Assembly: GCF_964204865.1 (NCBI RefSeq)
Contig: NC_135262.1
Span: 4,712,001 to 4,776,000, forward strand
Source of the DNA: Styela clava
Lineage: Eukaryota
DNA length: 64,000 nucleotides
Reading direction: 5' to 3'
Shown here in pieces: positions 444 through 55,447 of the stretch (its first letter is position 1; every line of letters starts with the position of its first letter). A program made the position numbers and the translations under genes. The notes under the pieces were generated by a model. The model ran no database searches, was not told where the DNA came from, and saw only the letters and a program-made list of their open reading frames with translations.

Positions 444-2060
444 TCAATACAGTGGAATTCTTACTGCAACTGAGGCTGTAGACACAATCTCCATATCAGT
501 CAAGTCAGTCACTTTCTCCCATTGATTTTTATCAAAATTGTACTTTTCAATAGAATAAGGGCCAGATGTATGTCCAACAGCAAACAAGTTGTTGCTGACA
601 ACACAAAGGCTGAACTCATTTCTTGGAATTGTCATTGAAGAAAGATTTGTCCAATTATTATCATCTGGATTGAAAAATTCAGTACCGGTACTTGATATCC
701 CATTCCACCCACCAGCAACATAGATTCGATCATCATATACGGCTGCAGCAGGAGTTTGTCTGCCAACATTCATTGGTTTCACAGATGACCAAGATCCTAA
801 TGACGAAGAATATTTATCAATACTTTTGACTCTACCACTTCCTCCAATGACATAAATCTCATCTCTGAACGTAACTAATGCACTTTCAATGAGTTTGAAA
901 CCAGAACACTCAACATTCTCCCACTTGTTTTCATTGTTATTGTATCGCTCCATTGTGTTATTCCCACCAACATAAACGAAGTTGTTATGAACTGCAGCTC
1001 TAATATATTGTCCATGATCATTCATCATACTCTCCATCTCAGTCCAACTTGATTCGGCTTCATATACATTCACACGATAAACCTTTTTCCCTGGCAGAAG
1101 AACAAAAACAAATTTCTGCGAACAGACTGCAGTGTATTTGCCACTCAGCATGTTTTCATTGAGTTGTTTCAAATTATTGAATGTTTCCTCGACTGGACAA
1201 TACACTTGAACAGCTTTAAATTTCTTATCAAAAAGTAAAACACCTTCATCACAAAGAGGAGACGACGAACATACATCTACTTCCACATCTTTATTAAGTG
1301 ATTTATTAGACAAGAACAATAATTTCATGAATTCTGCAGAACTTGAGCAAAATGAATCATTTCTGGCTAAATATAGTCCATAAGTGGTGGAAATTTTGTC
1401 AATATTGAGCTTTTTAACCATTTCTATAAATTGCCCAGCTCGAGACTTAGTATCAGCTTTGATCCATTGCAGGAGTATTTTCAGTTTAGAATCTTCGGAA
1501 TAAGATGATTTGTGAGAAGTCGTTAGAAACACAACATATTCTTTATCAAGTTTGTTAAATTCCGCTTTTTTAGCTATTGATCCAAGATGGCCAACAGCAT
1601 ATTCATCACATGATTGTTCTAAACCCTTTAGATTGAACTTTACAGCGAGTTGTCGAATACCGAAGAATGATTTTGGTCCCAAACTCGCTTTGAGAAATTC
1701 TGTGATTTTCTCGCAAAATCTTGACAATTGCATGATATTTGCAGCATGGAGTAGTTGTTCACATTTCTCCAAAGTAATTAAAGCATTTCCAGTGTAAATG
1801 TAATCAATGCAAACTTTCACAGAATCGACATCAACTTCCTTCATATCAACAATCCCTGTGTTGCTTTCCAAATTATCATGAGACAACATCGCATCAAAAT
1901 AATCAGAACCAGCTGACATTACATTCTTATGAACTGGAAATTCTTCGTTTCCAACCTTGATTGTAAAATCAGAAAGTCGTTTTTCTTTCCTCATATCATC
2001 AAGCTTTTGCATCATCAAATTATTGTGTTCATTATCTTGAATTCCAAAATCAGCAGCCAT
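444..2060 (-). CDS. BTB-BACK-Kelch (KLHL-like) protein, subfamily A copy A1, intact single-exon ORF (538 aa)
   Basis: BTB (SDFTIKVGNEEFPVHKNVMSAGSDYFDAM...IDYIYTG), BACK (SEDSKLKILLQWIKAD) and Kelch repeats (IYVIGG...Y...W; IYVAGG...W) in one ORF. Confidence 0.93.
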   Translation of the reverse strand: MAADFGIQDNEHNNLMMQKLDDMRKEKRLSDFTIKVGNEEFPVHKNVMSAGSDYFDAMLSHDNLESNTGIVDMKEVDVDSVKVCIDYIYTGNALITLEKCEQLLHAANIMQLSRFCEKITEFLKASLGPKSFFGIRQLAVKFNLKGLEQSCDEYAVGHLGSIAKKAEFNKLDKEYVVFLTTSHKSSYSEDSKLKILLQWIKADTKSRAGQFIEMVKKLNIDKISTTYGLYLARNDSFCSSSAEFMKLLFLSNKSLNKDVEVDVCSSSPLCDEGVLLFDKKFKAVQVYCPVEETFNNLKQLNENMLSGKYTAVCSQKFVFVLLPGKKVYRVNVYEAESSWTEMESMMNDHGQYIRAAVHNNFVYVGGNNTMERYNNNENKWENVECSGFKLIESALVTFRDEIYVIGGSGRVKSIDKYSSSLGSWSSVKPMNVGRQTPAAAVYDDRIYVAGGWNGISSTGTEFFNPDDNNWTNLSSMTIPRNEFSLCVVSNNLFAVGHTSGPYSIEKYNFDKNQWEKVTDLTDMEIVSTASVAVRIPLY

Positions 2061-5000
2061 GTTGAATTTATTATGATAAGCAAGAGCGCTAAATATAATC
2101 TTTCTTAGCTGTAATAAATTAAATGTTGATCAAATATTTTTGTGCTCATTCACTAACTTAACATATTTTCCTATTTTCATAAACCCGGAATACAAATTGA
2201 AATAATGACTGAAATTTGTGTTTTCAAGAAAAAAAAAATTAAAATCAAGAAATACCTCATAAACAATAAAAACATTTAAACACAAAACCTGCATTTGTCA
2301 TAAAAATTATACCTGAGCTATAAAACTGAGAATGAAGTACATGCCGCTACTATTCAAAAAACGTCAGACTTTACATATTTGCTTGAATGGTAAAAGATTT
2401 ATCTAGTGACTAATCTGATAAACAGGGTATACGAATATCGAACACCTGCCCCACATATGAATTATTATTTTACAATGTTACTAAAAACAAGGCAAAAATA
2501 TATTGAAGCAAAATGAGTAGCTGAAATTTCAGGCCTTCAAACTCAGAACACCATGCCACCACATATATAGGACTTTTAAATCATTTGGCATTTCAGGTTC
2601 AGGTTGGCATTTTCTACCAAATATTCCCTGTCATAGCTTAACACAGACTTATTAGAATCGAAAAAGTCAATTCCATTTTGTACGTATAAGTCTACACAGA
2701 CTACAAAACCAAAATTATATCAGACAAAAGATTTCAGTACGACTGTTTACACATATAGTTACAAACAATACATTGCTATTTCGTCACTTTCTGAAAATTC
2801 TATACATACACCTACTGTTACTCAAGGAATACAAAAGGTTTTATAATTAAACACAAAGCAGTTTCTGAATCATATATAAAAAAAGAAAGTTGAATTAAAT
2901 TCTCACTCCAGATCTCAAAGAGTCTAATGTCTGACATTTACCCCAGTCCAAAACATCATGACATGTTTAATGATAAAAATCTTAAAACAATAATGCCTGA
3001 ACTACCTTTTCGAAACAAGACCTACAAATCATATTCTGTTACAGTCAATTGCATACATATCATAGAATTGTAAAACAATGGAAAGCCATGTGTGGTTCAA
3101 CTCAATGTCATACAAATGCAAAATGTCAACTTCAAGGCGATGCATTTGCACAAAATATCAATGAGAAGCAAATGAACATGATTTTTCAACAAAAGTTGCA
3201 AACAATAGAGGAGGCAAAATGTTTGAGATTTAGTCATTGGAAATACTTGATGAAAATGTTTGAATGAACCTTCAGCTAACGTTGCCTAAAAAATTATTTG
3301 TAAGAATATTCAAATAAAAATCAAGTTGTTCAGATTTAAATATTTTTAAAATTCCTGCTTTGCAACAAACCCAGACTAGTTGCTTGTTTCATAGTGTCTA
3401 AAATATCTTATGAAGGACATCATCCACCAATATCATTAAAACATGAATAAACCTACACATAGTTTTTAACAGGTCGAAGTTTACTTGCAACCTTTCAATT
3501 ATTATTCCCACTTTCGAGGGATGTGGAACTTTCTTTAAGCAATATATATGCTAAACAATATGGGTTAAAACATAAAAATATGGTTGAGAATGGTTAACCG
3601 GTTAATCAATTAACCGATTTTAGCTAATTAACGGTTACGATTGATTTTAACTGTTAAGTGACTCAGGTAAAAATCATCTTTAGGATGTACAATTTCTTCA
3701 ACAATGATTACGTCATTGCAAATTTATCTCCTGTGGCGTTTAATTCAAAAGAATATCATTAACTGTATTGATTAGGACCCAATGAATGGGAAAAATAATT
3801 GAAGTACCAAGGTTGCTGAATATCAAAATTTGAAAATGATAAATTCAGAATCAGTTTTCGGTCAAAATATATTGTTTTATATATTTTATTGAATGGAACT
3901 ATCACTATCCGTGAATAATTTTGAGCGATACTGGGATAAGATCACCATCACGCTAAATTGCTTTGGAGCCATAACAAGCTAAATTATAAATTATTATGTC
4001 AAAAGCTACGCTGCGGTTAACCGGTTCATTTTATTCGGTTAACGGTTAAAGTATTTTCCCTGAAATTCTCACACTACATACAGATAATCCTCTGGTCACC
4101 CTTTTTTAACTGAAGTTATTTCACAATATAGCACGATGAAATGCATTAACCTAACACGGTGATCTGTATCTAGCATATTGAATGTGACAAGCTAATCAAA
4201 AAATACATGAAAATAATAAAGTCACTGTATCAGAAAAAGAAGTATCATTTGAACAAATAAAGGAATGTTAATCACTGTGAATGCTCTTAATGTTATCAAT
4301 ATTTTTTATAAGTGTCTACATACACAAGTCGGTTGGACAATCAAGGGCTATAATGTTTCCTCTATGATGTGTGATTGAATATGAATGTTTATGAGCGCGT
4401 AATGCATTTAAAAACATCGATCTTCTGAAGCTTTTTGATAACTAAAACATGACTGGGTGGGTATCATCTTTAAACTACATTTACCTATGTGCACTACGCT
4501 TATCGCAATTTTAGTCTGCATAGAAAAGCCGAGAAGATTGATTGTCTACGAAACTTTAACATAAAATCACATAGATATGAGCTATTGAGGGTGAACAAAA
4601 ATCATACTTGGAGAAGCTATGGACACAATGAAATTGTTAAATCAGATAATTCAATGTAAACTAGCTGCATTTAAACACCTCAAAACAATTTCAACCATTA
4701 ATTAAAATAATATGCCACAATCAGAAATACCAACTCAATAAAGTGACTCATAGTGCCATTGTTCAATTTAGTGAATACAGACGCCCATATTGGAATGGAA
4801 AGATTCACGCAAACATTTCAAAATTAAAACTATTCCCAAAGCATTGAAACCTATATGTAATATTGTGAATCTTTCAAAACAAGTTTACAATAAATCCTGA
4901 TAGTTTTTATTAATATTTTGTCATTAAGGTTAATTTTTGTTTGATACTGCAGATTGTCTTTGATTGCCAATATCCACACCATGAAGTTCAATATTTCTTC

Positions 5001-5293
5001 AATATTCAAACACTATTTAAATAGCTTAACAGTATTTTAATATCTGTAATAGACAATATACAATGAAGAAATAGAAGATCATAATTCATTTGTTAGAATA
5101 CATGAAATCACAGCGGAAAAATACAAAATTTTACTGCATGAAATGAACTTTTACTTTTATCAGGTACATATAATGTTGTCAGTTTCAAATCCATGCTGGC
5201 CACTTCAACCTTGCAATAATAAAATTAAACAATACCAAAATTAGAAGATCTTAGTACTACTAAGTTAAGTAGATCACATTTAGGAATCATAAT

Positions 5294-5795
5294 TAGGGCT
5301 GGTAATTTGAGGGAAGACACTGTAACCGGTTAACTGCAGCGTGACGTTTCAAACAATAATTTGTAATTTAGGCTTGTTGCGTCATAATGGTCCCAAAGTA
5401 TATTCGCGCGATCTTAATCCGGCATCGCTCTAATTATTCACGAATCGAGGTAGTTTCATGATCGCTCTGCTGCAAGAGTGGTTCGGATATATGGAAGTAT
5501 TTTAGTAAAACCCGATCCCGATATTAAATGTCATTTATGTGACAAATTTTTAAGTGCTCGATGTGCAGATTCAACTTTAAGATATCATAAAGAAAAACAG
5601 CATCAACTGCGCACTTGTTGGATGACATTAAATATACCATTTTGCAATAAAATCTTGAACAATGTATTTCGACCTGAAACTGATTCTGATTTTATCATTG
5701 TCAAATGTTCATAATCAGCTATCTTAATACTCATCTTCATACAATTATTTGATTTATTTCTCACAACCAAATAACCGGTTAACTAATCCCAGTAG
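5294..5795 (+). mobile_element. Decayed hAT-like element with a BED zinc-finger remnant; related inverted copy at about 3590-4076
   Basis: SDIWKYFSKT / frameshift / IKCHLCDKFLSARCADSTLRYHKEKQH; TAACCGGTTAA subterminal motifs; interrupts a conserved intergenic module. Confidence 0.55.
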
Positions 5796-7111
5796 TAAAC
5801 ATAATCATTCGCATATCAAATTCACTGCATATATGGAAATAAAACACAAAAATCAGAATCACAAATTCAAGAAAATAGCATTAGAAAGTTAAAAGCTCAA
5901 ATAATATTGACAAATTTCAAATGAAATCGGTTTGTAGTTGCTACATATGGAGTATCAGGACTCAGCTATATATGAAAATATCAGGAACACAATGCCCATG
6001 TTTCCAGTTCAGGATATGAATACATAAGCAAGCTTTGTGTAATAATGTCTGATGAAAAAATTTTGAGCAAAAGTAATTCAGATTTGACCGCATATTTTAC
6101 TATGGTACATTTTCCCCAAGAAAATGACCTTTATGTATTTTTCTCTTCCAGCAGTTTCCCTGGCAGTGTAAATGGGAGTCATTTCACGTCTTGTGACAAC
6201 CCCCTATTTATTAACCTATCCGCAGGAAGGAATCATTTGTATATATCTGTCAGTAGTTGCTAATGAACTATCTTGCTTGTATTAAAAATATTAATCCGAT
6301 ATATCAATATCGGATAAACATACAGTATGAGACTATCCCTTCATCATAATAAAAATGAATGTTACAAATGCTGGATAATATCATCATCAATGAACTAGTA
6401 TTGTACACATTTTACAGTGAGAGAAAATAATGGATCGAAATAGAAAAAAATAATAATACCAGCACATGAAATGCTATGATACCATAATGATGACAATTTT
6501 TGAGCAAAAGTAAATAGGGTTTGAACACATGCTATGGTAGGTTTTTCTAAAGAACCTCCGTATGTGTAATTTTCTCTTCCAGTCATTTCCGTGACAGTGT
6601 AAATGGGAATCATTTCAAGTCTTGTGTCAACCTCTATTTATTGACCTATCTGCAGGAACAAAGAAATTTGTATTTAACCGTAAATAGTTGCCTTCGACTA
6701 TTCTGTGTCAATACCAATTCAACACACCGTAAAGGGGTTGGCGCTTGGCTTTGATTAAAAAAAAAATTATATTACAATCAGTTATAATATTATCATCTAT
6801 TTATCAACTGCTTGCTGACAATTATACAGTATGAGAATATCAATTTACCATAAAAAGGGATGTTACTGGTTGACAACCATATTAGATAATATCACCATCC
6901 ATCAAAAATATATTTCATTTATTTACATGGCAGAAAATTTTGGAATGAAATGGAAAAACAATAAAAATAGCACATCAGTAAAAGTTTGAATAAACGCGAA
7001 AGTTAAAAGTTGAGTTTCACAAACAAGTCTGACTGATAAACGGAATAAATTCTACAAACGGCAAGGAAAATATTACTAAACACAATTATCTCTGCTTTGT
7101 AAACAGTTTTT

Positions 7112-8734
7112 TCATAGACAGTCAAACCAATACAATGGGATTCTTATTGCAATTGAAGCGGTGGTCATAATCTCCATATCAGTCCAATTCTTCCATTGTT
7201 TTTCAGGATCATACTCTTTAATAGAATAAGGCTCAAACTCTATTTCAACAGCAAACAAGTTTTTATTCACAACACAAAGGCCGAATTTGTCTTGTGGAAT
7301 TGACATAGAAGCAACATTTGTCCAAGTATTATAAACTGGATTGAAGAATTCAGTACTTGATAAGTAAGATGACCCATTCCACCCACCAGCAACATAGATT
7401 CGATCATCATATACAGCCGCAGTAGGAGTTCGTCTGCCAACATTCATTAGTTTCACAGATGACCAAGATCCTATATGTGGAGAATATTTAGCAACTCTTT
7501 TACCTCTATTATAGCCTCCAATGACATAAATCTCATCTCCAAATGTAACTAATGCATTTTCATCGGGTTCGATAGTAGAACACGCAACATTCTCCCAATT
7601 GTTTCCATTGTTGTTGTATCGCTCCATTGTTTTCTTCCCACAAACATAAATGAAGTTGTTATGAACTACAGCTCTGATACATTGTCCATGCTCTTTCATC
7701 ATATTCTCCATCTCAGTCCAAGTTGATTGAGCTTCCCATGCACTGACACGATAAACCTTTCTGTTTGGTAAAAGAACAAAAACAAATTCCTGCAAACAAA
7801 CTGCGGTGTATTTGCCACACAGCATGTTTTCATTGAGTTGCTTCAACTTATTGAATGTTTCCTCGATTGGACAATACACTTGCAAAGATTTAGATTTCTT
7901 ATCAAAAAGCAAAACACCTTCATCATAAAAGGGAGAAGACGGACATACATTTACTTTTTCAATCTTATCACACGATTTATCGGCCAGGTACAATAATTTT
8001 ATGAATTCTAGAGACTTCGAGCAAAACGAATCATTTCTGGCTAAGCATGATCCATAACTGCTAGAAATTTTGTCAATTTGGAGCTTCTGAACCATTTTTA
8101 TAAAATACTCAGCTCGAGTTTCTACCTCAGCTTTGATCCATTGTAAAAGAACCGACAGTTTAGAATCTTCTGAATATGATGACCGTTTGTAGGTGATTAA
8201 AAACATAACATAATCTTTATCAAGTTTGTTGAATTCTACTTCTTCTGCTATTGATCCAAGATGGATAACACCATATTCATCACATGATTTTTCTAAGCCT
8301 TTCAAATTGAACTTTTCTGCGAGTTGTCTGACATAAAAGAATGATTTGGAACTCAAATTTTTTTTGAGAAACTCTGCGATTTTCTCGCAAAATCTTGACA
8401 ATTGCATGATATTTGCAGCATGGAGTAGTTGTTCACTTTCCTCCAAAGTAATTGAAGCATTTCCAGTGTAAATGTAATCAATGCAAACTTTCACAGAATC
8501 GACATCGACTTCCTTCATATCAACAATTCCTGTGTTGCTTTCCAAATTATCATGAGACAACATCGCATCAAAATAATCTGAACCGGCTGACATTACATTC
8601 TTATGAACTGAAAATTCTTCGTTTCCAACTTTGATTGTAAAATCAGAAAGTCGCTTTTCTTTCCTCATATCATGAAGCTTTTCCATCATTAAAGTATTGT
8701 GTTCATTATCTTGAATGCCGAAATCAGCAGCCAT
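7112..8734 (-). CDS. BTB-BACK-Kelch protein, copy A2 (540 aa); small in-frame deletion in the last blade and a 5-aa C-terminal read-through
   Basis: Close paralog of A1. It ends PLYWFDCL because the paralogous TGA reads TGG. The last blade is YDPEKQWKNWTDME versus YDLDENQWEKVTDLTDME. Confidence 0.9.
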   Translation of the reverse strand: MAADFGIQDNEHNTLMMEKLHDMRKEKRLSDFTIKVGNEEFSVHKNVMSAGSDYFDAMLSHDNLESNTGIVDMKEVDVDSVKVCIDYIYTGNASITLEESEQLLHAANIMQLSRFCEKIAEFLKKNLSSKSFFYVRQLAEKFNLKGLEKSCDEYGVIHLGSIAEEVEFNKLDKDYVMFLITYKRSSYSEDSKLSVLLQWIKAEVETRAEYFIKMVQKLQIDKISSSYGSCLARNDSFCSKSLEFIKLLYLADKSCDKIEKVNVCPSSPFYDEGVLLFDKKSKSLQVYCPIEETFNKLKQLNENMLCGKYTAVCLQEFVFVLLPNRKVYRVSAWEAQSTWTEMENMMKEHGQCIRAVVHNNFIYVCGKKTMERYNNNGNNWENVACSTIEPDENALVTFGDEIYVIGGYNRGKRVAKYSPHIGSWSSVKLMNVGRRTPTAAVYDDRIYVAGGWNGSSYLSSTEFFNPVYNTWTNVASMSIPQDKFGLCVVNKNLFAVEIEFEPYSIKEYDPEKQWKNWTDMEIMTTASIAIRIPLYWFDCL

Positions 8735-10722
8735 GTTAAACTTGATACAGTAAGCAAAATTATTAACTTTAATCTTATTTAGCTGTAATATGAAATGAAT
8801 ACATTTTCAATATTTTTGATTTTTATCTACACTAAATTATTACATTTCATTGTTTTATACTCACACACGGATATAAAGAACGGATAAACAGAAATTTATA
8901 TTTTAAAATAAATTTTTCCCAAGATTTAGTGCTTTGGAAACAAAATGAAACATCCAACACATAACTTGCTATGGCCAGAAGGTAATACATGATCTCGATA
9001 AATATGAATGAATGGGATGGCTGAGCTACTCGTAAAGTGAAGCTGTTTGGCATATTTACTTTAAATAATTGAATATTTATTTATTAAGTTGATATGTAAA
9101 CAAAGCCACCCAGGGAATAATAAATTCTAACTATATTTACAAAAAAAAGCTCTTTGTTCTGAGAATACAGTTCCAAATATTCTGAAAGCTTCTAGCAATC
9201 AAATAGCAGTCGACGAGTGGTTGGCGAAGCCTTATCGAGTCAAATCATATGGTCAGTCCCTACGGATAGGTATACGAGTATAATTCATTTTGTCTGATAC
9301 GAGTTCCTGCTCATTACTTTGTTATCACATGCTAAATATTTGGTACTCCTGAAGTATGTGTACCAAAATGGCGGACACCGGAATGTAGTACCGTATGTTT
9401 ACCAGGTTAGGGATAGGCCATAATTTTAGGTACAAATACTACGCGGGTCACTTCTCTATTCCACGAACTCGTGAAAGAATTAAAATAAGGAACATTGGAA
9501 AAATGCAAACATTCGAAATTAAAACTATTCAAATTAAAACCCAAATGTAAGTTTTCCGAATCTTTCCAATGTAAATTTACAATAAATCCCTTCTTTTTTT
9601 ATTAGTATTTTGTCATTAGATTAACGTTTTGTTTGAAACTGCAGATTGCCTCTGATCGCCAATATCCACATCATGAAGCTGATGTCGCGCTATATTTTTT
9701 TTGATATTTAAACACTATTTCGATAGGTTAACAGTATTTTAATATCTGTAATAAACAATATACAATACATTAATAGAAGATTATAACTCATTTGTTAGAA
9801 TACAAGAATTTACAACAAAAAATAATTTTTATTACATACAATGAACTTTCACCTTTATCGGGCACACATATACAATGTTGACAGGTTCAAAGCCATGCCC
9901 GCCATTTCAACTTGCTATAATAAAAATGGACAATACCAAACTTTGAAAAAATTGCACCACTAAAGTAAGTAGATCATTGGGCTCTTAGCTGGAGCCCTGC
10001 TCCGAGCTAAATATAAAAGCATCTCTTAAAAAGGCTAGATTCAACTTTTGCAACAAAATTTAAACTTATATTAGAAACTTCAGAAGATCAATAACTAATT
10101 TAGTAATCATTATCACGTGCATTGAATTTCTGTTGCATAAATAGTAATAAAACACAAAAACAAATTCAAGGAGAATATATTCCAGCTGTTTCCTTGACAG
10201 TGAAATTCGAATCATTTCAAGTCTTGTGTCAACCACTATTTATTAACATATTTGCAAAGAGGAGGAATTTGGATATAACTGCCAGTAGTTGCAATAAAAC
10301 TATTCTGTTTACTTCTCATTCCACATGCTATAAAGGGGTTGACACTTGGTTTGTATTGAAAATTTATTAGTATATAACAATCTGTTATATTATTATCATC
10401 TATTTAACAACTGCCTTAAATATTCATACAGTATGCGAAAATCAAATTCACCATAGAAAGTAATATTACTAATCCGCAACCATGTTGGATGATATCAACC
10501 TATATCAAAAACACAAAATATCAGATTAAAATGCAAATAAACTAAAATATATGAATAAATTAAATAAACAAGTCTAACTGATTAAACGGAGGAATTGTGG
10601 GAACTTCAAGTGGAAACTAATGTATAAAAGCATATATGGTAGATAATACATGCATGACTAATAATGTTTATCTCTGTTGAAACATTGAAATAGCCTTTTT
10701 ATACATAACATCTACAGTCAAC

Positions 10723-12336
10723 TCAATACAGTGGGATTCTTACTGCAGTTGAAGCAGCAGACATAATCTCCATATCAGTCAAATCAGTCACTTTCTTCCA
10801 TCGATTATTATCAAGATCGTATTTTTCAATAGAATAAGAGTCAGATCCATCTCCAACAGCAAACAAGTTGTTGCTGACAACACAAAGGCTGAAATCATCT
10901 CTTGGAATTGTCATAGAAGCCACATTTGTCCAAGTATTATCATCTGAATTGAAGAATTCGGTACTTGATAGATTGGAATCATTCCACCCACCAGCAACAA
11001 ATATTCGATCATCATATACAGCTACCCCAGGAGCTCGTCTGACAACATTCATTGGTTTCACAGATGACCAAGATCCTACAGATGGGGAATGTTTATCAAC
11101 TTTTTCACCTCTTTTAATGCCTCCAATAACATAAATCTCATCTTTAAATGTAACTAATGCACTTTCACTGGGTTTGATATTAGAACACTCAACATTCTCC
11201 CACATGTTCTCATTATTGTATCGCTCCATTGTGTTATTCCCACAAACATAAATGAAGCTGTTATATACTGCAGCTCTAATATATTGTCCATGATCATTCA
11301 TCATACTCTCCATCTCAGTCCAACTTGATTCGGCTTCCCACACATTGACACGATAAACCTTTTTTTCTGGCAGAAGAACAATAACAAATTTCTCCGAATA
11401 AACTACAGTGTACTTGCATTTTGGCAGAAAATCAATGCAGTATTTCAACTGTGTCAATTTTCTTTCAATTGGTTGATACAAGTTCATACATTTGGAGTTC
11501 ATATCAAAAAGCAAAATGCCTCTGTGAATGAGAGGAGAGTGTAAAGGGACTGTAACTTTTAGATTTTGATGAGGTGATTTATCAGCCAAGTACAATAGTT
11601 TCATAAATTCTGCACAACTTGAGCAAAATGAATCATTCATAGCTAAATATGATCCATAACTGGTAGAAATTTTGCCAATGTTGAGCATCTTCACAATTTG
11701 TAAAAAATATTCAGCTCGAGACTCAGTATCAGCTTTAATCCATTGTAGCAGAATCTCGAGTTTGGAATCTTCCGAATATGATGACTTATCATGAGTCAGC
11801 AAAAACTCAACATAATTCCTATCAAGCCGATTAAATTCTTCTTCTTTTGCTATTGATCCAAGATAAATAACAGCATATTTATCACATGATTCTTCTAAAT
11901 CTTGTAGATTGAATTTTACTGCGAGTTGTCGGATAATGAAAAATGATTTTGGTCCTAGATTCCCTTCGAGAAAATCTGCGATCTTCTCACAAAGTCTTGA
12001 CAATTGCATGATATTTGCAACATGGAGTAGTTGTTCACTTTTGTCCAAAGTAATTGAAGCATTTCCAGTGTAAATGTAATCAATGCAAACTTTCACAGAA
12101 TCGACATTGACTTCCTTCATATCAACAATTCCTGTGTTGCTTTCCAAATTATCATGCGACAACATCGCATCAAAATAATCTGAACCAGCTGACATTACAT
12201 TCTTGTGAACTGGAAAGTCTTCGTTTCCAACTTTGATTATAAAATCAGAAAGTCGCTTTTCTTTCCTCATATCATCAAGTTTTTGCATCATCAAAGTATT
12301 GTGTTCATTATCTTGGATGCCAAAATCAGCAGCCAT
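10723..12336 (-). CDS. BTB-BACK-Kelch protein, copy A3, intact (537 aa)
   Basis: Same architecture as A1; full ORF from MAADFG to RIPLY. Confidence 0.93.
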   Translation of the reverse strand: MAADFGIQDNEHNTLMMQKLDDMRKEKRLSDFIIKVGNEDFPVHKNVMSAGSDYFDAMLSHDNLESNTGIVDMKEVNVDSVKVCIDYIYTGNASITLDKSEQLLHVANIMQLSRLCEKIADFLEGNLGPKSFFIIRQLAVKFNLQDLEESCDKYAVIYLGSIAKEEEFNRLDRNYVEFLLTHDKSSYSEDSKLEILLQWIKADTESRAEYFLQIVKMLNIGKISTSYGSYLAMNDSFCSSCAEFMKLLYLADKSPHQNLKVTVPLHSPLIHRGILLFDMNSKCMNLYQPIERKLTQLKYCIDFLPKCKYTVVYSEKFVIVLLPEKKVYRVNVWEAESSWTEMESMMNDHGQYIRAAVYNSFIYVCGNNTMERYNNENMWENVECSNIKPSESALVTFKDEIYVIGGIKRGEKVDKHSPSVGSWSSVKPMNVVRRAPGVAVYDDRIFVAGGWNDSNLSSTEFFNSDDNTWTNVASMTIPRDDFSLCVVSNNLFAVGDGSDSYSIEKYDLDNNRWKKVTDLTDMEIMSAASTAVRIPLY

Positions 12337-13239
12337 GTTGAATATAATACAGTAAACTAGTATGATAAATTTAATCTTTTTTCTTTAAAGAAATTTAATA
12401 TTGATCAAATAATTTTGCTTCTTTTATTCACTAAATTATAATATTTTCGTGTTTCGTACACTCATGTATACGAAATTGAAGAATATAAGAAATAAAGTTT
12501 TTGTGTTTTGATAAAATAAAAAACCAAGCAATAGCTCAAAAACAATGAATAAACCAAAAAACCTGCAGTTGCCATATAAAATGATACTTAAGCTCAAAAA
12601 CCAGAGGAAATAGAATAGCTGATTTTATTTACATTTATTTAAAATGGCAACGCTGATTACTCTGCGTGGGGTCGCAAGTTCCAATCCCAGGGATTGGAAT
12701 TCATATGCTATGTTTCAGGGATAGTTATGTGCGACAGGATTGCTGGACGAGAGGCCGTAGTTCGCCATATGGTTGAGCCGTTTTATCAACTTTCCTCTCC
12801 TAAAATGTGAATCCTAACCTAACCTTCTGTGATTCCTAACCATGTGAATCCAAACATGTTTTTTATTGGTCAGGTAATGTACTCAAATGTGTGATACCAA
12901 ATCTTACACAGAAAACAAGAGTGCAGATGGGACCACAACCACCAGTCAGTAACGTGAAGCACATAAAGACAGTGAGAAGTCCAGTAACCCTCTAACATAA
13001 AACCTGGTGTAACAAGTTCCAATAAAACCATAACTAAGACTTACATTGATATTGTTCTTCAATTTTGATCTGTACAGAATTTTGTAAAAAAACATGCTTA
13101 AGACATTGAAGTTTTAAGCATATAGTGGATTCAATAAACTACAAGTGCAATGCGCTTGCTATATAAAAAGAATAGAAACTCAGAACATATTATTTACACA
13201 TATTTAGATGAGAATATTTGTATTTCCTATAGAAAACAG

Positions 13240-13418
13240 GGCGCTCCAGTATGTGTACCAATATGGAGGTAACTAATTTTGTTCGACTACTTTACATCAA
13301 GTTGTGTAATGGAACTGAAGCCTATGGGAAGGGAAGGGGGTATATTCACTTGGCTAACACAGACAGTCCCCGAAATTATGGCCTAACCCTAACCTGGTAC
13401 ACATACTACAGGAGTACC
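13240..13418. mobile_element. MITE family M1 (Merlin-like), copy with perfect TSD
   Basis: Ends GGCGCTCC...AGTATGTGTACCA / TGGTACACATACTACAGGAGTACC; 8-bp TSD GAAAACAG. Empty paralogous site at about 52545. Confidence 0.78.
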
Positions 13419-14586
13419 GAAAACAGGTTACCTAGCCACTTTTAGTCATGTTACAGAATTGAAAGATGCCATGAAAATGGCTCAAACAATAAGAAAATAC
13501 CATAAGTCAATTCAATAAACCAGTGACTCAGACGTACAGTACCGCAAGCCTAATCTGATGAAAGATTGATTACCTTGTACTGTACAACTACAAGGTCGAC
13601 CGAATACTGCAAAAGTGGCTGATTAGCACCCTTTTGACGTACAGGGCTTACACATAATGAATTGTACCAAATATTTGCTGTTAGTGGAAAACAACGAAGC
13701 AAACAACCCCCTCCCCCAAGACCCCCCCCAGTACATAGGCTACCTGTACGCTACACAGCAATGAGAACATGCTAATTGGTTCGTGTATTATGTATTATGC
13801 TGGCTGGCTGAACGCCAAAACGGGACTTTTGATCGACCGGTCAGGGCGCCGGGACAAGACGTTGAAAAGCGGGACAGTCCCGCCTAAAACAGGGCTAATT
13901 TAGTAAGCCTACATAAAGCATATCAATGAGTCCTCTGATGCTGAGTTGCTCCCTTTTGAAAATTTTGTTCGTTAACTTTGTGGCCACCTTTGACAGAGTA
14001 TTTGCCCCGGGATTGAAGCTTCCACTAAGATTATTACTGCAACTAGCAAGGAGGGAGTGCGGTTATTGCAGATAAGGGATACTAGAAGTCATCAGCAGTT
14101 TGGCGTGTGATGACAATGTTTGAATAATTTTAGGGGGTCGAATGATTCAAGATTGTGTGATTTATCCGGGCCCTACTAGTAAATCGGGTTAGTTGTTTTA
14201 TAGGCAGTTTTATACTGTACATGTTATGGCTGTAGTATAAAAAGGTATCACTGGGTGTTGGCATAATAAAGTTTTCTTCAGTTTAACAATGTCTTACTAC
14301 TCCATTCTAGAATAACAAGATTTGAGGAAATAATTGGGCATTAATATCATACAATTCTTTATGTGGTTCACCTGAATGTTATTATAACAAAAATTCGTTA
14401 CTGTAATGTGCAGATAGCAATTATAATCGAGCTAAGATCCTTGCACAAATATATAAGGGTTAAAATAATTGAACAAATAGTTTCCATAAAATACAATGAA
14501 GTTCTACAGAAAAAAAAGTTTTATCAACGAGCAAGTGCAACATATTGTAACAACTCTTATTAAAAGTCAGGGATAAATGAAAGTAT

Positions 14587-14804
14587 GGTACTCTCGTAGT
14601 ATGTGTACCAGGTTATAGTTAGGGCATAATTCCTTTATGTTTCTCCTTATTTTAGTTCTATTACGAGTTCGGGTACTGTCTGTGTTAGACAAGTGAATAT
14701 ACATACCCCCTGTCCATAGGTTTCAGTCTCTTTAAACAACTTGATGTAAAATAGGCGAACAAAATTAGTTACCTCCATATTGGTACACATACTTCTGGAG
14801 CGCC
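14587..14804. mobile_element. MITE family M1, opposite orientation
   Basis: GGTACTCTCGTAGTATGTGTACCA ... TGGTACACATACTTCTGGAGCGCC; TSD GAAAGTAT / AAAAGTAT. Confidence 0.75.
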
Positions 14805-15025
14805 AAAAGTATTTACCCACTGCTTGCACATGGTACATAAAATCATATTGACCATGGTGACCAAACACCTTACAATATTAGCTTTGATTTTTGTTTTTTT
14901 TGCATGGAAGTAAAAGGGCACAATTACACACATGGCCTACCATTTGTATCAACTTTTAATAATAACGTGTAGGTATTATATCAATTCCTATTGAATCCAA
15001 TAAGTTCTCACCCACTGCATTCACA

Positions 15026-24262: not shown

Positions 24263-24304
24263 TAATCTATTTTGTAATCATATCGCTTATTATCATGAGG
24301 TCAT

Positions 24305-37983: not shown

Positions 37984-37994
37984 AATCTACAGTC

Positions 37995-39611: not shown

Positions 39612-42600
39612 GTTGAATTAGTGACAGGAAGCAAGAGTGATAAATATAATATTTTTTACCTGTAAAAAATCAAATATTGATCAAATATTTTTGTGCTTAT
39701 GTCCACTGAATTAATATATTTTTCTATTTCATAAACCCTTGAGAGCAAATTGGAAGAATAAACAACACAAAAAATAATTTTTCATGAAATTAAGGAAAGT
39801 AAGGAATAATGTTGTTTGTGAAGCCAATATTAGAAGTCGCATGACAATAAAAAAGCCTCAGGACTCACTGGCCGATGTTTTATAACATCGAATGATTCAA
39901 AACCAAACCTTGTTTGAAAATCATAATGATTCAATCGATACTTGATTGAAGACTCAAAAAATATGGTCAGGCCCTATGGCTAGTTGTATAATTTATTCTG
40001 TTCCAGCGCCTCGCTTTGTTGTCACGCGCTAAATATCTAGGGTTGAATTTAGGCCAGTTCGATTCCCACATAAATTAGGCTATTAATATAAAATGTTCAT
40101 TAAAAGCACAACTCACAAAGTATAGAAAGCAGCAGTATATATGTAACAGACTCTTATGAATATTACAAAATAAGAATGCTACTACGAAAACAGTATACCC
40201 TTTGAATACAGTCAAATATTTTTGGGTTATGACATACAGTACATATAATCCTCTCGTAGTCCTTTTTCTACAAAAGATCTTTCACAATATAGCATGATGA
40301 AATGCTTTTTTAACCTAACACGGTGATCTGTATCTAGCATACTTAATGTGACAAGCTAATCCAAGAAGGCATAACTGTTTCAGGAAAATAAGTGTCATTG
40401 AACAAACAAACAAAGGTATGTTAATTACTGTGAATGCTCTTCCTGTAACCATGATTTTTTAAAAGTGTCTACATACAAAAGCTGGTTGGACAATCAGGGG
40501 CTATAATGTTTCCCCGTTAATGTTTATAATAGAACATGCATAGGTGGATGAACATGAATGGTTAGGAGTGCGTAATACATTTAAAAACATCGATTAAATT
40601 TTAGCATTAAATTTTAATCACAGATTGTAAAAAAATTAAAACTGACGATACTGCAATATCACCATGCAATCTAATGGGCCACTGTCTGCAAATTGTAAAC
40701 TTTCTAAATTTAAATTTCGGCCCTAGCGTCGTGCATGACAGTCAAAACCATCAACCCAGACAAGTGCCTACATTATCTATATAATTTGTGATGTAACAAT
40801 GTGATCAAATCTGTTCTTTGGTGAATGACATTTTTTATTTCATGTTCGCCACGTTTGCATTGTTTTCTGCAATTGATTATTTTATAAATTGATTTATTAG
40901 ATTATAGAAACCCAGATGTACATCCTTTGTATACTGTTTATCAGTAGTATACCCTACCTGGGTTTGAAAAACACTGCTACAGAAACAATGAAATTACTAA
41001 ATCAGAGAATTCAATGAAAGTTGGCTGTATTTGAACACCTCAAGACAATTTCAAATTAGACACAAGAATCAGAAATAACAACTCAATAAAGTGACTGATA
41101 ATGACATTATTCAATTTAGTAAATACAAACTATCATATTGGAATGGAAAGATTCATGAAAACATTCCAAATTAAAACTATTCCCAAAGCATTGAAATCTA
41201 TGTAATTTTGTCAATCTTTCCGATATAAGTTTACAATGAGTCCTAATAATTTTTTTAATATTTTGTCATTACCGGTAATATTAATGTTTAGTTTGATACT
41301 GCAGATTGTCTTCGATTGCCAATATCCACATCATGAAGATGGAGTCGCTCAATATTTCTTTAATATTCAAACACTATTTCAATAGGTTAGCAGTATTTTA
41401 ATATCTGTAATAGACAATATACAATGCATTTATATAAGATTATAATTCATTTGTTAGAATACCCGAAATCACAGCAAAAAATACAAGGCTTTTCTAATTA
41501 TGAAATGAACTTTACTTTTATCAGACACATAAATACAATGATGGAGAGCAAGTATATCTTAGGTTCAATCCCACACTATGATAAAATTGGACAATACAAA
41601 ACTTGGAAGATCCAGTAGTAATAATGTAGCAGATCATTATTAATCAAAGAGCCTTGTTCTGTGTTAAGATGTTAATGTACCTCATTTTTACATGGAAGCA
41701 AAAAGGTAAAATTCAAGTCATGGAATAAAATTTGAACTCATACTTAGAAGATCATCAAATAACTTAATAATCACCATTCACCTTAATCAGTCACATATAT
41801 ATATATATACAATGTTGTCGGGATCAAAGCCATGCCCACCACTCCGAACATGATATAATAATATTGGACAATACCAAACCCGGAAAGATTTTGTACTACA
41901 AGGGTAAGTAGATCATTATTACTCATTGGGTTCTTGGCTGGACCCTTGTTCTGAGCTAAGATATAAAAGCACCTGATAAAAAGTTAAAATTCAACTTTTG
42001 TAATAAAATTAAAACTTGTATTAGGGACTTCAGGAGAATATCAACTCATCTAGTAATCATTATTGTGTGCATAGAATTTTTGGGCATGGATATTAATAAA
42101 AAACAAACACCAGAAATACAAATAAAAGAAGAACATGTTCCAGCTATTTCCCTGACAGTGTAAATTTGAATCATTTCAGGTCTTGTGTCAACCCCTATTC
42201 ATTGACCTATCTGCAGAAAAGAGAAATTTGTATATATCTGTCAGTAGTTGCTTACAACTATCTTGTGTTAATACTCATTCAACACACCATAAAGAGGTTG
42301 GGATTTTGCTTTGATTAAATATAAAAAGGTATATAACCATCATGTATACTATTATCATTTATTTATAAACTGTCTTCGAATGATCATACAATATAATATC
42401 CGAATAACAATTTACCATAAAAAGGGAATGTTACTGATTGGAAACCATGCCTGTTAATATCACCATTCATCAAAAAATATATTTCATTTAAAAACAACGG
42501 CAGAAAATTTTGGATTAAAAATGAAAAACAACAAAAATAGCACATTAGTAAAAGTTAAGTTGCATAAACAAGTCTGACTGATAAACTGAATATATTCCAC

Positions 42601-42638: not shown

Positions 42639-44263
42639 TCAATACAGTGGGATTTTTGCTGCAATCGAGGCTGCGGACACAATTTCCATATCAGTTAAAT
42701 CAGTCACCTTTTCCCATTGATTTCTATCAGGATCATACTTTTCAATAGAATAAGGCCCAGATATATGTCCAACAGCAAACAAGTTCTTATTAACAATACA
42801 AAGGCTGAAATCAACTCTTGGAATTGTCATCGAGGTCATATTTGTCCAAGTATTACATTCTGAATCATAGAATTCAGTACTTGATGTGGGGGTGTTAGTT
42901 TTGATACAAAACCCACCAGCAACATAGACTCGATTACCATATACGGCTGCAGCAGGAGCCCATCTGGCAACAGTCACTGGTTTCACAGATGACCAAGATC
43001 CTCCAGATGGAGAATATTTATAAACTTTTTCACATCTATTACCGCCTGCAATAACATAAATCTCATCTTTAAATGTAACGAATGCACTTCCATTGGGTTT
43101 GATATCAGAACAATCAACAATATTCCACTTGTTATCATTGTTATTGTATCGCTCCATTGTGCCATTTCCACAAACGAAATGAAGCTGTTGTGAACTGCAG
43201 CTCTGATATATTCACCATGATCATTCATCATACTCTCCATCTCAGTCCAAGTTGATTCAGTTTCCCATGCATTGATACGATAAACCATTCTGCTAGGCAA
43301 AAGAACAAACACAAATTTCTTGAAAAAAACTGCAGTATATTTGGCACCCAGCATGTTCCCATTAAGTTGTTTCAAATTATTGAATGTTTCCTCGATTGGA
43401 CAATACACTTGAACAGCTTTAGAATTATTATCAAAAAGCAAAACACCTTCATCAGAAATAGGAGAAGACAGAGATACATTTACTTCTTCATCTTTATTAA
43501 GTGATTTATTAGAAAAGTATAATAATTTCATGAATACTGCAGAACCTGAGCAAAATGAATCATTTCTGGCTAAATATAGACCATAACTGGTAGAAACTTT
43601 GTCAATATTGAGCTTTTTAACCATTTCTATAAAATGCTCAGCTCGAAACTCAATATCAGCTTTTATCCACTGTAAAAGAACTTTCAGTTTAGAATCTTCG
43701 GAATATGATGACCTTTTGTAGGTGATGAAAAACATAACATAATCTTTATCAAGTTGGTGGAATTCCTCTTCTTTTGCTATTGATCCAAGATGCCCCACAG
43801 CATATTTATCACACGAGTCCTCTAAATCCTTCAAATTAAACTTAACTGCGATATGTCGGATGATGAAGAAAGATTTAGGACCTAAATTTGATTTGAGAAA
43901 TTCAGATATCTTTTCACAAAATCTTGACAATTGCATGATATTTGCAACATGGAGTAGTTGTTCACTTTTCTCCAAAGTAATAGAAGCGTTTCCAGTGTAA
44001 ATGTAACCAATGCAAACTTTCACAGAATCGACATCGACCTCCTTCATATCAACAATTCCTGTATTGCTCTCCAAATTATCATGAGACAACATTGCATTGA
44101 AATAATCTGAACCGGCTGACATTACATTCTTGTGAACTGGAAATTCTTTGTTTCCAACTTTGATTGTAAAATCAGAAAGTCGCTTTTCTTTTCGCATATC
44201 ATCAAGCTTTTGCATCCTCAAGTTATTGTGTTCATTATCTTGAATGCCAAAATTAGCAGCCAT
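42639..44263 (-). pseudogene. BTB-BACK-Kelch copy A7, single 1-nt frameshift near 43176
   Basis: caaacgaaatgaag here versus caaacataaatgaag in paralogs. ORFs 42983-44263 and 42639-43157 together cover the full protein. Confidence 0.82.
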
Positions 44264-45770: not shown

Positions 45771-45830
45771 TACTATTATGATATAATAAAATTAAACAAT
45801 AACAAAATTGAAAGATCTTGTACTACTAAG

Positions 45831-48964: not shown

Positions 48965-49172
48965 GGCGCTCCAGAAGTACCAATATGGAGGTAACTAATT
49001 TTGTTCGCCTATTCTACATCAAATCGTGTTAAGGGACTGAAACCTATGAGCCGGGGATATATTCACTTAGCTAACACAGACAGTATCTGAACTCGTAATA
49101 GAAATAAAATGAGGAAAATTGGAATAAAATTATGACCTAACCCTAACCTGATACACAAACTACAGGAGTACC
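48965..49172. mobile_element. MITE family M1 inserted at the last codons of A8
   Basis: GGCGCTCCAGAAG ... CTACAGGAGTACC abutting the Ile-Pro codons of A8. Confidence 0.75.
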
Positions 49173-50779
49173 GGAATTCTTATTGCAATCGAGGCAGTGG
49201 ACATAATCTCCATATCGGCCAAATCAGTCACTTTCTGCCACTGGCTTTTATCAAGATCGTACTTTTCAATAGAATAAGCGCCAGATGCATTTCCAACAGC
49301 AAACAAGTTGTTGTTAACAACACAAAGACTGAAAACAAATCTTGGAATTGTCATTGAAGTAAGATTTGTCCAAGTATTTTCATCTGGATTGAAGAATTCA
49401 GTACTAGATAGAACGGACCCATTCCACCCACCAGCAATATAGATTCGATCATCATATACAGCTGCAGCAGAAACTCGTCTGCCAACATTCATTGGTTTCA
49501 CAGATGACCAAGATCCTACAGATGGAGAATATTTATCAACTTCTGCATCCCTGTTACGACCTCCAATAACATAAATCTCATCTCTAAATGTAACTAATGT
49601 ACATTCAAAGGGTTCGATACTAGAACACTCAACATTCTCCCACTTGTTTTCATTGTTCTCGTATCGTTCCATTGTGTTCTCCCCACAAACATAAATGAAG
49701 TTGTTATGAACTGCAGCTCTAATATATTGTCCATGATCATTCATCATACTCTCCAGCTCAGTCCAACTCGATTCGGCTTCCCATACATTGACACCATAAA
49801 CCTTTCTGTTTAGCAGGAGAACAAAAACAAATTTCTTCAAATAAACTGCAGTGTATTTGCCATCTAGCATGTTCTCATTGAGTTGTTTCAACTTATTGAA
49901 TGTTTTGTCTATTGGGCAATACACTTGCAAAGCTTTGGATTTCTTATCAAAAAGCAAAACACCTCCATTATGAATAGGGGAAGACAAAGTAACAGTTACT
50001 TTTTCATCCTTTTCGGGTGATTTATTTGCCAAGTACAGTATTTTCATGAAATCTGCAAAACTTGAGCAAAACGAATCATTTCTGACTAAATATGACCCAT
50101 AACTGGTAGAAATTTTGCCCATGTTAAGCTTCTTCACCATTTCTATAAAATACTCAGTTCGAGACTCAGTATCAGCTTTGATCCACTGTAAGAGAACCGT
50201 CAGTTTAGAATCTTCTGAATATGATGACCACCTACAAGTGATCAAAAACACGACATAATCTTTATCAAGTTCGTTGAATTCTGCTTCTTTTGTTATAGAT
50301 CCAAGATGGATAATAGCAAATTCATCACATGATTCTTCTAAACCTTTCAAATTGAACTTTATTGCGAGTTGCCGAATGATGAAGAACGATTTAGGACCCA
50401 AGTTTGCTTTGAGAAATTCGGCGATTTTTTCACAAAATCTTGACAATTGCATGATATTTGCAACATGGAGTAGTTGTTCACATTTCTCCAAAGTAATTGA
50501 AGCATTTCCAGTGTAAATGTAATCAAATCAAACATTCACAGAATCGACATCGACTTCCTTCATATCAACAATTCCTGTGTTGCTTTCCAAATTATCATGA
50601 AACAACATCGCATCAAAATAATCAGAACCAGCTGACATTACATTCTTGTGAACTGGAAATTCTTTTTTTCCAACTTTGATTGTAAAATCAGAAAGTCGCT
50701 TTTCTTTCCTCATATCATCAAGCTTTTGCATCATCAAATTATTGTGTTCATTATCTTGAATGCCAAAATCAGCAGCCAT
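49160..50779 (-). pseudogene. BTB-BACK-Kelch copy A8, in-frame nonsense codon (TGC Cys to TGA at 50528-50530); the terminal stop is supplied by a MITE
   Basis: ORFs 50528-50875 and 49160-50491 are in the same frame. The paralogous ATG is at 50779. The C-terminus is IPVLL* rather than IPLY*. Confidence 0.85.
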
Positions 50780-53850: not shown

Positions 53851-55447
53851 TTAGACTGGCATTGTGATAGCTACAGTAGCCGTAGACATGATAATTATAT
53901 CAGGAAAATCAATTTCATCCCACAAGTTCAAATCAAAATTATACTTTTCAGCAGAATGTGGTGTTCCTCTATCCCCTACTGCATATAATTCATTACCAAC
54001 AACAGACAGCCTGAATTCGTCTCGCGGTATTGTCATACACGCTAAATTAGTCCAGGTATCACTGTGTGGGCTGAAATATTCCAAACTAGACAATGCATCG
54101 CCCAAGTAACCTCCAGCCACGAATATTTGTTCTCTGAAGACAATAGCAGCAGGTGTCTGTCGAGCTGTATTCATTGAACTGACCTTCGACCAAGAATTAT
54201 CAAGAGGTGAATATTTTTTAACGTCTTTCATTATTTTTTGTTTGTTATCAAGACCTGCAATAACATAGATAAAGCGGTCTAACTCAACTACAGCACAATC
54301 CCGAATTATCTCATTATCACATTGCACTTGTTTCCAGCTATTTTCAAGATGATTGAAATGCTCCATCACATTATTTCCAACGACAAAAATCGAATTTTTA
54401 TATACTGTAGCAGATAACCTTTTACCATGATCCGAATTTGTTTCTTTCATCTCAATCCAAGTGGAGTGTTCTTCATGTACATTGATGCGATATACTTTCT
54501 TATTTCCAAACAAAACATATAAATATTCTTTTAAAACAACTGCAGTATATGACCCTGTAATCATCTGATCATTTAGTGGTCTCAACTTGGTCATTTGATT
54601 TTGATTCGGTTCAAAAACTTGAAGAAAATTTGTCGATTTGTCGAAAATAATTAATGCATTTGTCATTGTTTAATATTCAGCAACTTGTACAGGTGACTCT
54701 TTCACTCCAAAGGTATCAGCCATTGATAGCAAGAAAGTATTCATGCAATATGCAGATTCTTTACAAATTTGATTGTGCTTAGCTAAATAGTGTATGTATT
54801 TGGGAGTAACCTTACTAATATTAACACAATGCAACGATTTTCAACATCAGTTTCTGCAGAAGAACAGCAAGTTTTGCATCTTCCGAATATTCAACATTAT
54901 TTGTTCCCACAAGTAATGAAACAAACTTCACATCAAGGCTTTTGAATTCTTCTTCATTTGCAATTGCACCAAGACTTTGAAATGCAAAATTATCACAGAT
55001 TTGCTCTAGGCTTTGAATATTGAACTTCAATGCTATTTCTCGGATTCTGAAAAACATCTTGGGATCCAATTTAGTTTCGAGAAACTCAGCTATCTTAGCA
55101 CAAAGTACTGACAACTGCATCAAAGTTGCAACATGGAGTAGTTGTTCACTTTTTTCCAAAGCAATTGAAGCTTTTCCAGTGTAAATGTAATCAATGCAAA
55201 CCTTTACCGATTCCACATTCACATCCTTCATTTCAACAACTCCATTACTACTTTCCAATGTATCGTGTGAAAACATGGCAACAAAATAATCCGACGCTGC
55301 CATCATAATTTTTTTGTCAACGTGAAACTCCTCTTCTCCCACTTTTATGATAAAATCACATGACTGTTTTTCCTTCCTCATTAAATCAAGTCTTTCCATC
55401 ATTGTGGCATTATGTTCATTAATATCAATGCCCAAATCGCATTCCAT
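53851..55447 (-). pseudogene. BTB-BACK-Kelch pseudogene, subfamily B copy B2
   Basis: ORFs 54821-55447 and 53851-54666. Relative to B1 it has 7-nt and 22-nt deletions at about 54835-54855 in the BACK region, causing a frameshift. Confidence 0.88.

Follow-up and report, generated by a model that had tools for sequence, protein, structure and literature searches.

A tandem array of Styela clava BTB-Kelch genes with a homogenised BTB head and apparently diversifying loops on the likely substrate-binding face

When one domain of a tandemly repeated gene family stays constant and another varies, does the constancy reflect constraint, does the variation reflect selection, and what would the proteins recognise? 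These questions are raised by a 64,000-nucleotide stretch of the Styela clava genome (hereafter the window; positions 4,712,001 to 4,776,000 of contig NC_135262.1, forward strand, RefSeq assembly GCF_964204865.1), in which an initial annotation, made from the letters alone, had described 11 same-strand BTB-Kelch paralogs in 55 kb as a lineage-specific set of Cullin-3 adaptors with a constant BTB domain and rapidly diversifying substrate-binding loops. Using tblastn with an intact copy (37995-39611) as query, we recovered these 11 BTB-BACK-Kelch loci, which all lie on the minus strand within 444-55447. We conclude, with a probability of roughly 0.6, that they belong to a species-restricted BTB-Kelch array whose N-terminal head has been homogenised while loops on the likely substrate face diversify, the proteins forming a putative repertoire of Cullin-3 (Cul3) adaptors.

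Each protein is predicted to begin with a BTB dimerisation domain, followed by a helical BACK domain and a Kelch propeller of six blades. Pfam profiles match BTB (PF00651, E 1e-22 to 1e-23, residues 20-126), BACK (PF07707, E 6e-10 to 1e-9, residues 133-227) and, in the intact copies, three Kelch_1 repeats that cover blades IV-VI only, blades I-III being degenerate. AlphaFold2 models of copy 37995-39611 and of a copy from a sister array on contig C1 (predicted local distance difference test, pLDDT, 88.9 and 87.1, respectively) both display the BTB, a helical BACK (helices 131-250 in copy 37995-39611) and a propeller in which DSSP delimits six four-strand blades closed by the C-terminal strand; the domains of copy 37995-39611 span residues 1-126 (BTB), ~127-250 (BACK) and 270-538 (propeller). 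In Foldseek searches the best full-length matches are Cul3-bound KBTBD2 and KLHL22, and the propeller matches KLHL12 (template modelling score, TM, 0.82; 28% identity) and Keap1 (TM 0.81). Profiles, models and fold matches thus agree with the BTB-Kelch architecture proposed initially, to which they add the BACK domain.

The array is larger than the window lets one see, with 16 loci over 87 kb (contig C17, 4.681-4.767 Mb), eight of them intact; two thirds of it lie inside the window, and the upstream remainder includes four further intact copies of the A type, which predominates in the window, and a second C-type copy. Its genes are intronless. The whole family comprises at least 80 loci (in the 377-Mb assembly, 82 of 619 first-look candidates match at E<=1e-10), with arrays on contigs C17, C1, C10 and C18. 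Two of these arrays served for comparison: the D array (C17, 4.43-4.48 Mb), with 46-48% identity to the A type of the window, and the C1 array (23.02-23.30 Mb, about 40 loci), with 31-34%. Among named proteins, the nearest relatives, at 66-78% identity, are all annotated in Styela clava as 'kelch-like protein N', and the next named matches reach at most 27% (21-24% for Pristionchus, Branchiostoma and insects); unnamed relatives among Logan and ENA proteins share 30-52%. Judged on named sequences, the family is therefore Styela clava-specific and tandemly expanded, in line with the lineage-specificity claimed at the outset, and lineage-specific tandem expansion is one of the criteria by which adaptively diversifying gene families are recognised. 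The genes are 80-85% identical between copies, with homology that begins at the stop codon and reaches a point ~150 nt before the ATG, and the spacers between copies are 65-80% identical; since both genes and spacers match, the array, by this comparison, has grown by duplication of whole 4-7 kb units.

We then compared the copies within the propeller. Every loop string singled out by the initial annotation (those after VIGG, after VAGG and after AVG, and the RQTP/RRTP and RNEF/QDKF sets) is present in the alignment, although three of the seven strings assigned to A copies come from broken copies, whose decay had been overlooked. A concentration of variation in the loops does hold within blades III-VI, where nonsynonymous divergence (dN) is 0.395 in BC loops and 0.118 in strands, but it does not hold for the protein as a whole: the top divergence is found in residues 241-315 (BACK end, linker and blades I-II; dN 0.29-0.38), where synonymous divergence (dS) is high too. 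The dN/dS ratio is 1.07 (0.68-1.75) in BC loops, 0.49 in DA loops (dN 0.179), 0.61 in the bottom loops AB and CD, and 0.40 in strands. With dN/dS of 0.2-0.4, most of the protein in the intact copies is under purifying selection.

Site models were fitted with our own codon-model code (GY94, F3x4; relative branch lengths were taken from either M0 or an IQ-TREE nucleotide tree and kept fixed). Over codons 331-551, the Kelch region, twice the log-likelihood difference (2dlnL) was 33.4 for M1a/M2a, 40.8 for M7/M8, the site test that had been proposed for this locus, and 30.9 for M8a/M8, with a positively selected class of omega ~4.5-5.3 on 4-5% of codons. All seven sites with a posterior >0.8 (351, 408, 435, 454, 456, 457 and 498) are located in BC or DA loops, as placed by the DSSP strand boundaries of the AlphaFold2 model together with the Keap1 alignment. 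What diversifies rapidly would then be a small class of codons at omega ~4-5, and not the BC loops as a class, which stay near 1. Because recombination inflates site-model tests, the models were rerun on five segments, each with a separate tree: M1a/M2a gave p 0.88 for the BTB, 0.056 for the BACK, 0.39 for residues 251-345, 0.0066 for blades III-IV and 1.4e-5 for blades V-VI. With the 8 intact copies alone, blades III-VI gave p 1.6e-4 (M1a/M2a) and 4e-6 (M8a/M8). A tree-free test, comparing second-codon-position diversity with the diversity of 4-fold sites of the same region, placed 12 of the 79 top-loop codons above the 95th percentile of 4-fold sites (4 expected, p 5e-4), and none of the 129 codons outside the top loops. 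Note that with a whole-gene 4-fold reference this test is negative for the A array; the same-region reference was adopted because the high-dS BACK inflates the whole-gene one. Overall, these data moderately support positive selection on a few BC and DA loop positions in blades III-VI of the window array.

The sister arrays provide a replication, strong in C1 and weaker in D. They share with the window array the family (31-48% identity), the organisation and the hot loop positions. In the C1 array (21 intact copies), 2dlnL reaches 305, 357 and 269, the selected class (omega 5-6) taking up 4-5% of codons, and the array's own AlphaFold2 model places 18 of the 19 selected propeller sites in BC or DA loops; its BC loops have a dN/dS of 1.37 (0.92-2.06; P(<=1)=0.058) and the tree-free test gives p 8e-6, so that positive selection is strongly supported there by the codon comparisons. 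The positions that are hot in both arrays are 408 (the first residue after GG, or GG+1, in blade IV), 454-457 (the BC loop of blade V) and 391/392, together with 435/436 and 481/482, the first and second residues after the DA-loop arginine (R+1/R+2). The D array yields p 3e-4 for M7/M8, with sites 456 and 499. Compared with the window array, the C1 array is younger (BTB dS 0.08), has almost all its copies intact and gives a far stronger selection signal, and the array of the window appears as an older (dS 0.3-0.7), half-decayed arm of the family. At C1 codons such as residues 364, 392 and 441 of locus L027, we also observed a few discrete states, 2-3 nt apart (for example GGA, CAG and GAA).

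Do these positions lie where a substrate would bind? BC and DA loops stand on one face of the Kelch propeller, and the proposal that the variable loops are the BC and DA loops of the likely substrate face is borne out by the AlphaFold2 model and the Keap1 alignment. When the family is aligned to Keap1 with HMMER (chain numbering minus 7), site 408 corresponds to Tyr525, 498 to Phe478, and 435 to Asn414, adjoining Arg415. The Nrf2 pocket of Keap1 is lined by Tyr334, Ser363, Asn414, Arg415, Phe478, Arg483, Ser508, Tyr525, Ser555, Tyr572 and Ser602 (PMC6891428), which in each blade are the first residue after GG and the first or second after the DA-loop arginine. By homology, the hypervariable positions of the family coincide with the pocket-lining repeat positions of Keap1.

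The other end of the protein bears on whether the family could act as Cul3 adaptors. The best sequence match of the BTB-BACK region is KLHL3 (E 3e-23), in which A77 and M78, contact residues of helix alpha3, and E85 are all needed for Cul3 binding (PMC3616122); the aligned residues A57, M58 and E65 are conserved in the family. The phi-x-E motif of helix alpha3.1 (M83-S84-E85 in KLHL3) aligns to N63-L64-E65, in which the glutamate is kept. It reads N-L-E in A and D and N-V-E in C1, throughout the family (for example at 39417-39425 of the window, minus strand), where KLHL3, KLHL11 and KBTBD2 have Met/Phe/Leu-Ser-Glu. That phi is an asparagine, not a large hydrophobic residue (PMC3616122), counts against an adaptor function, and its presence in all three subfamilies would fit proteins that are BTB-Kelch in fold but act, for example, as scaffolds, decoys or inhibitors whose targets are bound but not ubiquitylated, or that assemble solely among themselves via the homogenised BTB. 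We regard such a non-adaptor role as improbable: A57, M58 and E65 are kept, a hydrophobic Leu or Val adjoins the asparagine, the family has the BACK/3-box helices, its best full-length fold matches are to Cul3-bound proteins, and the BTB is the best-conserved domain between subfamilies. The genome also holds five multi-exon cullin loci. Given the retained contact residues and the match to KLHL3, Cul3 binding is plausible, with a non-canonical motif.

The near-identity of the first ~115 residues, which had been read as a constant adaptor domain, is real in the A copies (dN 0.039 over residues 1-115). Stronger protein constraint is not its cause: dN/dS is 0.22 in the BTB and 0.23 in the BACK, while dS is 3.8 times lower in the BTB (0.18, bootstrap 0.13-0.24, vs 0.67, 0.53-0.84). 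Because dS is low at equal dN/dS, the identity is better explained by concerted evolution than by extra constraint; gene conversion, which the initial annotation had listed as an account that would undercut its own, thus largely applies within the array, with dS proportionally low. Third positions diverge by 0.10 in the BTB, compared with 0.30 in the BACK and 0.26-0.42 over the 200 nt preceding the ATG, such that the BTB forms a 345-nt low-divergence island with both flanks diverged. The pattern is most simply read as repeated gene conversion that either affects the BTB alone or has been retained nowhere else. In support of this, recombination is detectable (PHI-like test, P<0.002 for the whole gene and 0.002 for the Kelch region), the nearest neighbours of copies switch between segments, and residues 255-310 fall into two clear haplogroups in the alignment; on this evidence the copies exchange sequence and are hence mosaics. 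The C1 array displays the same BTB pattern (dS 0.084 in the BTB, 0.24 in the BACK), and the dS comparison did not find it in the D array. When the A subfamily is compared with the D subfamily, the BTB reaches 72% identity and the other domains 42-44% (BACK 42%), which points to a real long-term constraint on the BTB at that depth. The BTB island clearly illustrates how concerted evolution can be restricted to a single domain.

The state of the individual copies matters for how the loop variation is read. The loci of the window, with the transposon and the upstream block that belong to them, are as follows.

444-2060, minus strand: A-type gene, intact, 538 amino acids, 76% identical to copy 37995-39611 (open reading frame, ORF; Pfam BTB, BACK and three Kelch_1)
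7112-8734, minus strand: A-type gene, intact ORF of 540 amino acids, C-terminus altered (ORF, alignment)
10723-12336, minus strand: A-type gene, intact, 537 amino acids (ORF, tblastn, alignment)
15029-16517, minus strand: B-type pseudogene, N-terminus degenerate, two TGA stops (tblastn pieces in frames -1, -3 and -2)
22796-23071, minus strand: C-type gene, C-terminal piece (blades V-VI), severed by insertion of a long interspersed nuclear element, LINE (tblastn)
23216-27518, plus strand: LINE retrotransposon inserted in the C-type gene (Pfam, ORFs)
29260-30663, minus strand: C-type gene, N-terminal part (amino acids 1-442), then LINE-derived sequence (ORF, tblastn)
31924-33539, minus strand: A-type copy with one 1-nt deletion beside an A-run (LPGKK codons, ~amino acids 322-326)
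34847-35745, minus strand: A-type fragment, amino acids 89-388 only, with a frameshift and two stops (tblastn)
37995-39611, minus strand: A-type gene, intact, 538 amino acids; the reference copy, used for the AlphaFold2 model and the read alignment
39612-39760, minus strand: upstream block of ~150 nt, 65-80% identical among copies (alignment)
42639-44263, minus strand: A-type pseudogene, one 1-nt deletion in blade III (FIYVCG)
49160-50779, minus strand: A-type pseudogene, TGC>TGA at codon 84, in the BTB
53851-55447, minus strand: B-type pseudogene, BTB-BACK ORF (54821-55447) and Kelch ORF (53851-54666) in different frames, with a TAA

Intact ORFs are thus found at 4 of the 11 loci (444-2060, 7112-8734, 10723-12336 and 37995-39611); the second of these ends differently from the others, with AVG changed to AVE, a 3-residue deletion in strand D of blade VI and a 5-residue tail. 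The LINE at 23216-27518 carries an ORF1 with a coiled coil and a Baculo_FP_2nd domain (Pfam E 1e-11) and an ORF2 with PHD-like, endonuclease and reverse-transcriptase domains, the latter split into two ORFs. The second C-type copy (L021, C17:4680858-4682249, outside the window) has an ORF of 467 amino acids, equal to the LINE-split copy, and its lesion is unlike that of the window copy: blade V has lost a short stretch and shifts frame after EYFDPQT; with one broken and the other split, both C-type genes of the array are dead. That the array is truly intact and its broken copies are assembly errors is very improbable. Copy 31924-33539 could be either a young pseudogene or an assembly indel, its single lesion being a 1-nt deletion beside an A-run, typical of long-read errors; the other lesions, however, are no homopolymer slips (TGC>TGA; a substitution plus a deletion in ATTTATG), the B copies are broken in several frames with several stops, one copy is a 900-nt fragment, another carries a 6-kb LINE insertion, and L021 is broken in its own way. 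We therefore rejected assembly error for all lesions save possibly that of copy 31924-33539: copies are continually lost through frameshifts, stops and LINE insertion, in a process of birth and death.

One intact copy may be transcribed. Reads were aligned to 36500-42400, around gene 37995-39611 only, from runs of low depth whose RNA type is a guess. Contigs of three RNA-like runs from two studies cover the gene body (38076-39651), and no RNA-like contig lies in the unique intergenic flanks, which a DNA run covers at 8-24x. One RNA-like contig of 573 nt matches the BACK/linker segment at 97% identity; it can be assigned to this locus because the paralogs differ by 15-30% there, and its mismatch fits the 1.72% heterozygosity of Styela clava (PMC7540406). 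These contigs suggest low-level transcription of the gene. In the upstream block, the A copies share a conserved TTATTACAG ~48 nt ahead of the ATG, with a purine-rich stretch after it; this element looks like a candidate splice acceptor or spliced-leader (SL) trans-splice acceptor; separately, RNA-like contig coverage ends in the bin closing at 39651, near this element. In run X1, a 433-nt contig (38721-39167) is missing 14 nt at ~39029; this loss would shift the frame and may reflect either a null allele carried by another individual or an artefact of that run's assembly.

Relaxed constraint combined with gene conversion is the alternative that has to be weighed most closely: redundant duplicates would decay, their loops would be the least constrained parts, and shuffling between paralogs would mimic substitution, all without adaptation. 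Several points weigh on this side and against the reading we prefer. As a class, the BC loops are not distinguishable from neutrality at 1.07, all top loops pooled have a dN/dS of 0.67, which is compatible with relaxed constraint, and whole-loop dN/dS is 0.70 in the D array, where M8a/M8 gives p 0.085 and the tree-free test is negative. Seven of the 11 copies in the window, and 8 of the 16 in the array, are broken; with seven copies dead, this part of the family may be leaving the genome. The recombination detected by the PHI-like test is known to inflate site-model tests, sites 454-457 fall in an indel-rich loop of uncertain alignment, and the codon-model code, with its fixed relative branch lengths, is neither PAML nor HyPhy. 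In the C1 array, many hypervariable codons show identical multi-nucleotide states in copies that are not sisters, a sign that loop cassettes are shuffled between paralogs, and a dual-rate (FUBAR-like) grid keeps ~12 sites, about half; we take the latter as a caution and not as a test, because the synonymous rate is not identifiable at saturated codons. On the expression side, the RNA status of the runs is guessed and their depth is low.

Nevertheless, we consider purely relaxed evolution rather unlikely as the full account. Neutral loops predict a dN/dS of 1 and not a class of codons at 4-5, and the likelihood-ratio tests hold with per-segment trees (~100 codons) and without the pseudogenes. 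The tree-free test, which recombination cannot inflate, finds its excess in the top loops only, and the bottom loops AB and CD, equally exposed, remain at 0.61 without any excess. Finally, the same repeat positions are hot in the C1 array, where nearly all copies are intact and the BC loops reach 1.37.

Other features of the window were noted alongside the genes. A second LINE-type retrotransposon (59955-63884, minus strand) has an ORF1 with a long coiled-coil region and an intact ORF2 (59955-62915, 986 amino acids) with endonuclease and reverse-transcriptase domains. A 355-nt tandem repeat (27773-28688; 2.6 copies, 91% identity) comes just after the 3' end of the inserted LINE, still within the interrupted C-type gene. 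Gene 37995-39611 is directly bordered on its 3' side by a high-copy repeat (37091-38075), with a summed contig depth of 1,800-17,000 in the DNA run vs 8-24 in the unique flanks; it is abundant in the RNA-like runs too and contains an internal 166-nt direct repeat (37148-37313 and 37732-37893, 86% identical). An Rfam scan of the window gave no match.

How does the family compare with known systems? It has the BTB-BACK-six-blade-Kelch architecture in common with the vertebrate KLHL/KBTBD proteins (KLHL12, KLHL3, Keap1, KBTBD2), and its variable sites occupy the GG+1 and R+1/R+2 positions that form the Keap1 pocket (PMC6891428). It differs from them by a sequence identity of only 20-28%, by intronless genes in tandem arrays of tens of copies, by the degenerate blades I-III and by the asparagine at phi of phi-x-E, and it has no established orthology to any single KLHL. 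Poxvirus BTB-Kelch genes, such as that of vaccinia A55, are likewise intronless, and their products bind Cul3 (bioRxiv 10.1101/461806); A55 is also among the BTB-BACK sequence matches (6i2m, E 2e-13). The S. clava array, in contrast, is host chromosomal DNA interspersed with host LINEs, and a viral, poxvirus-like origin of the intronless genes was dropped, as viral proteins are no closer than cellular KLHLs.

Closer parallels in organisation come from other adaptor families. The MATH-BTB and F-box families of C. elegans and the MATH-BTB family of grasses are also lineage-specific tandem expansions with many pseudogenes, in which the cullin-docking domain is conserved and the substrate domain evolves fast (PMC4091423, PMC8120010). 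Their substrate domain, however, is MATH or FTH/FBA, whereas in S. clava it is a Kelch propeller in a chordate host, and in S. clava the constancy of the docking domain stems largely from concerted evolution. A 2006 study by Thomas in Genome Research reportedly found the same features for nematode and plant adaptor families. In vertebrates, TRIM5 and the B30.2 domain of fish finTRIM proteins provide E3 ligase-linked recognition domains with positively selected surface loops, encoded in multigene arrays and with an antiviral role. The S. clava array resembles them in having a recognition domain of a putatively E3-linked type with selected surface loops; it differs in that theirs is the RING-TRIM ligase class with another fold, and the antiviral role is theirs. 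Expanded ubiquitin-ligase adaptor families with fast substrate domains are already known from nematodes and plants (F-box, MATH-BTB) and, within a different ligase class, from vertebrate TRIMs. In the literature searched, we found no description of BTB-Kelch expansions in ascidians or elsewhere, and the S. clava genome paper makes no mention of BTB or kelch.

If the reading we prefer is right, the BTB-Kelch proteins would serve as substrate receptors of a Cullin-3 RING ligase, the substrate would be bound by the loop face of the propeller, and loop changes would retune specificity, giving a repertoire of receptors with different targets. A bolder extension, which we consider speculative and improbable at present, is an intracellular variable-receptor system in which hundreds of Cullin-3-adaptor BTB-Kelch genes tag fast-evolving foreign or selfish proteins for degradation. 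Gene conversion would keep the BTB head interchangeable, perhaps so that any two members can dimerise, while the pockets would be diversified by selection and by paralogs trading loop or blade cassettes, for which pseudogenes would act as donors; candidate targets would be viral, transposon-encoded or non-self proteins. Were this true, the sister group of vertebrates would possess an innate recognition repertoire based on ubiquitin. More generally, the homogenised head indicates that paralogs can align with a 'constant domain' without that domain being under stronger protein constraint. And if the loop diversification is adaptive, the family would make receptor diversification accessible to study on a fold that is well understood, in which pocket positions can be read from the Keap1 and KLHL12 structures and substrates could therefore be sought by pull-down.

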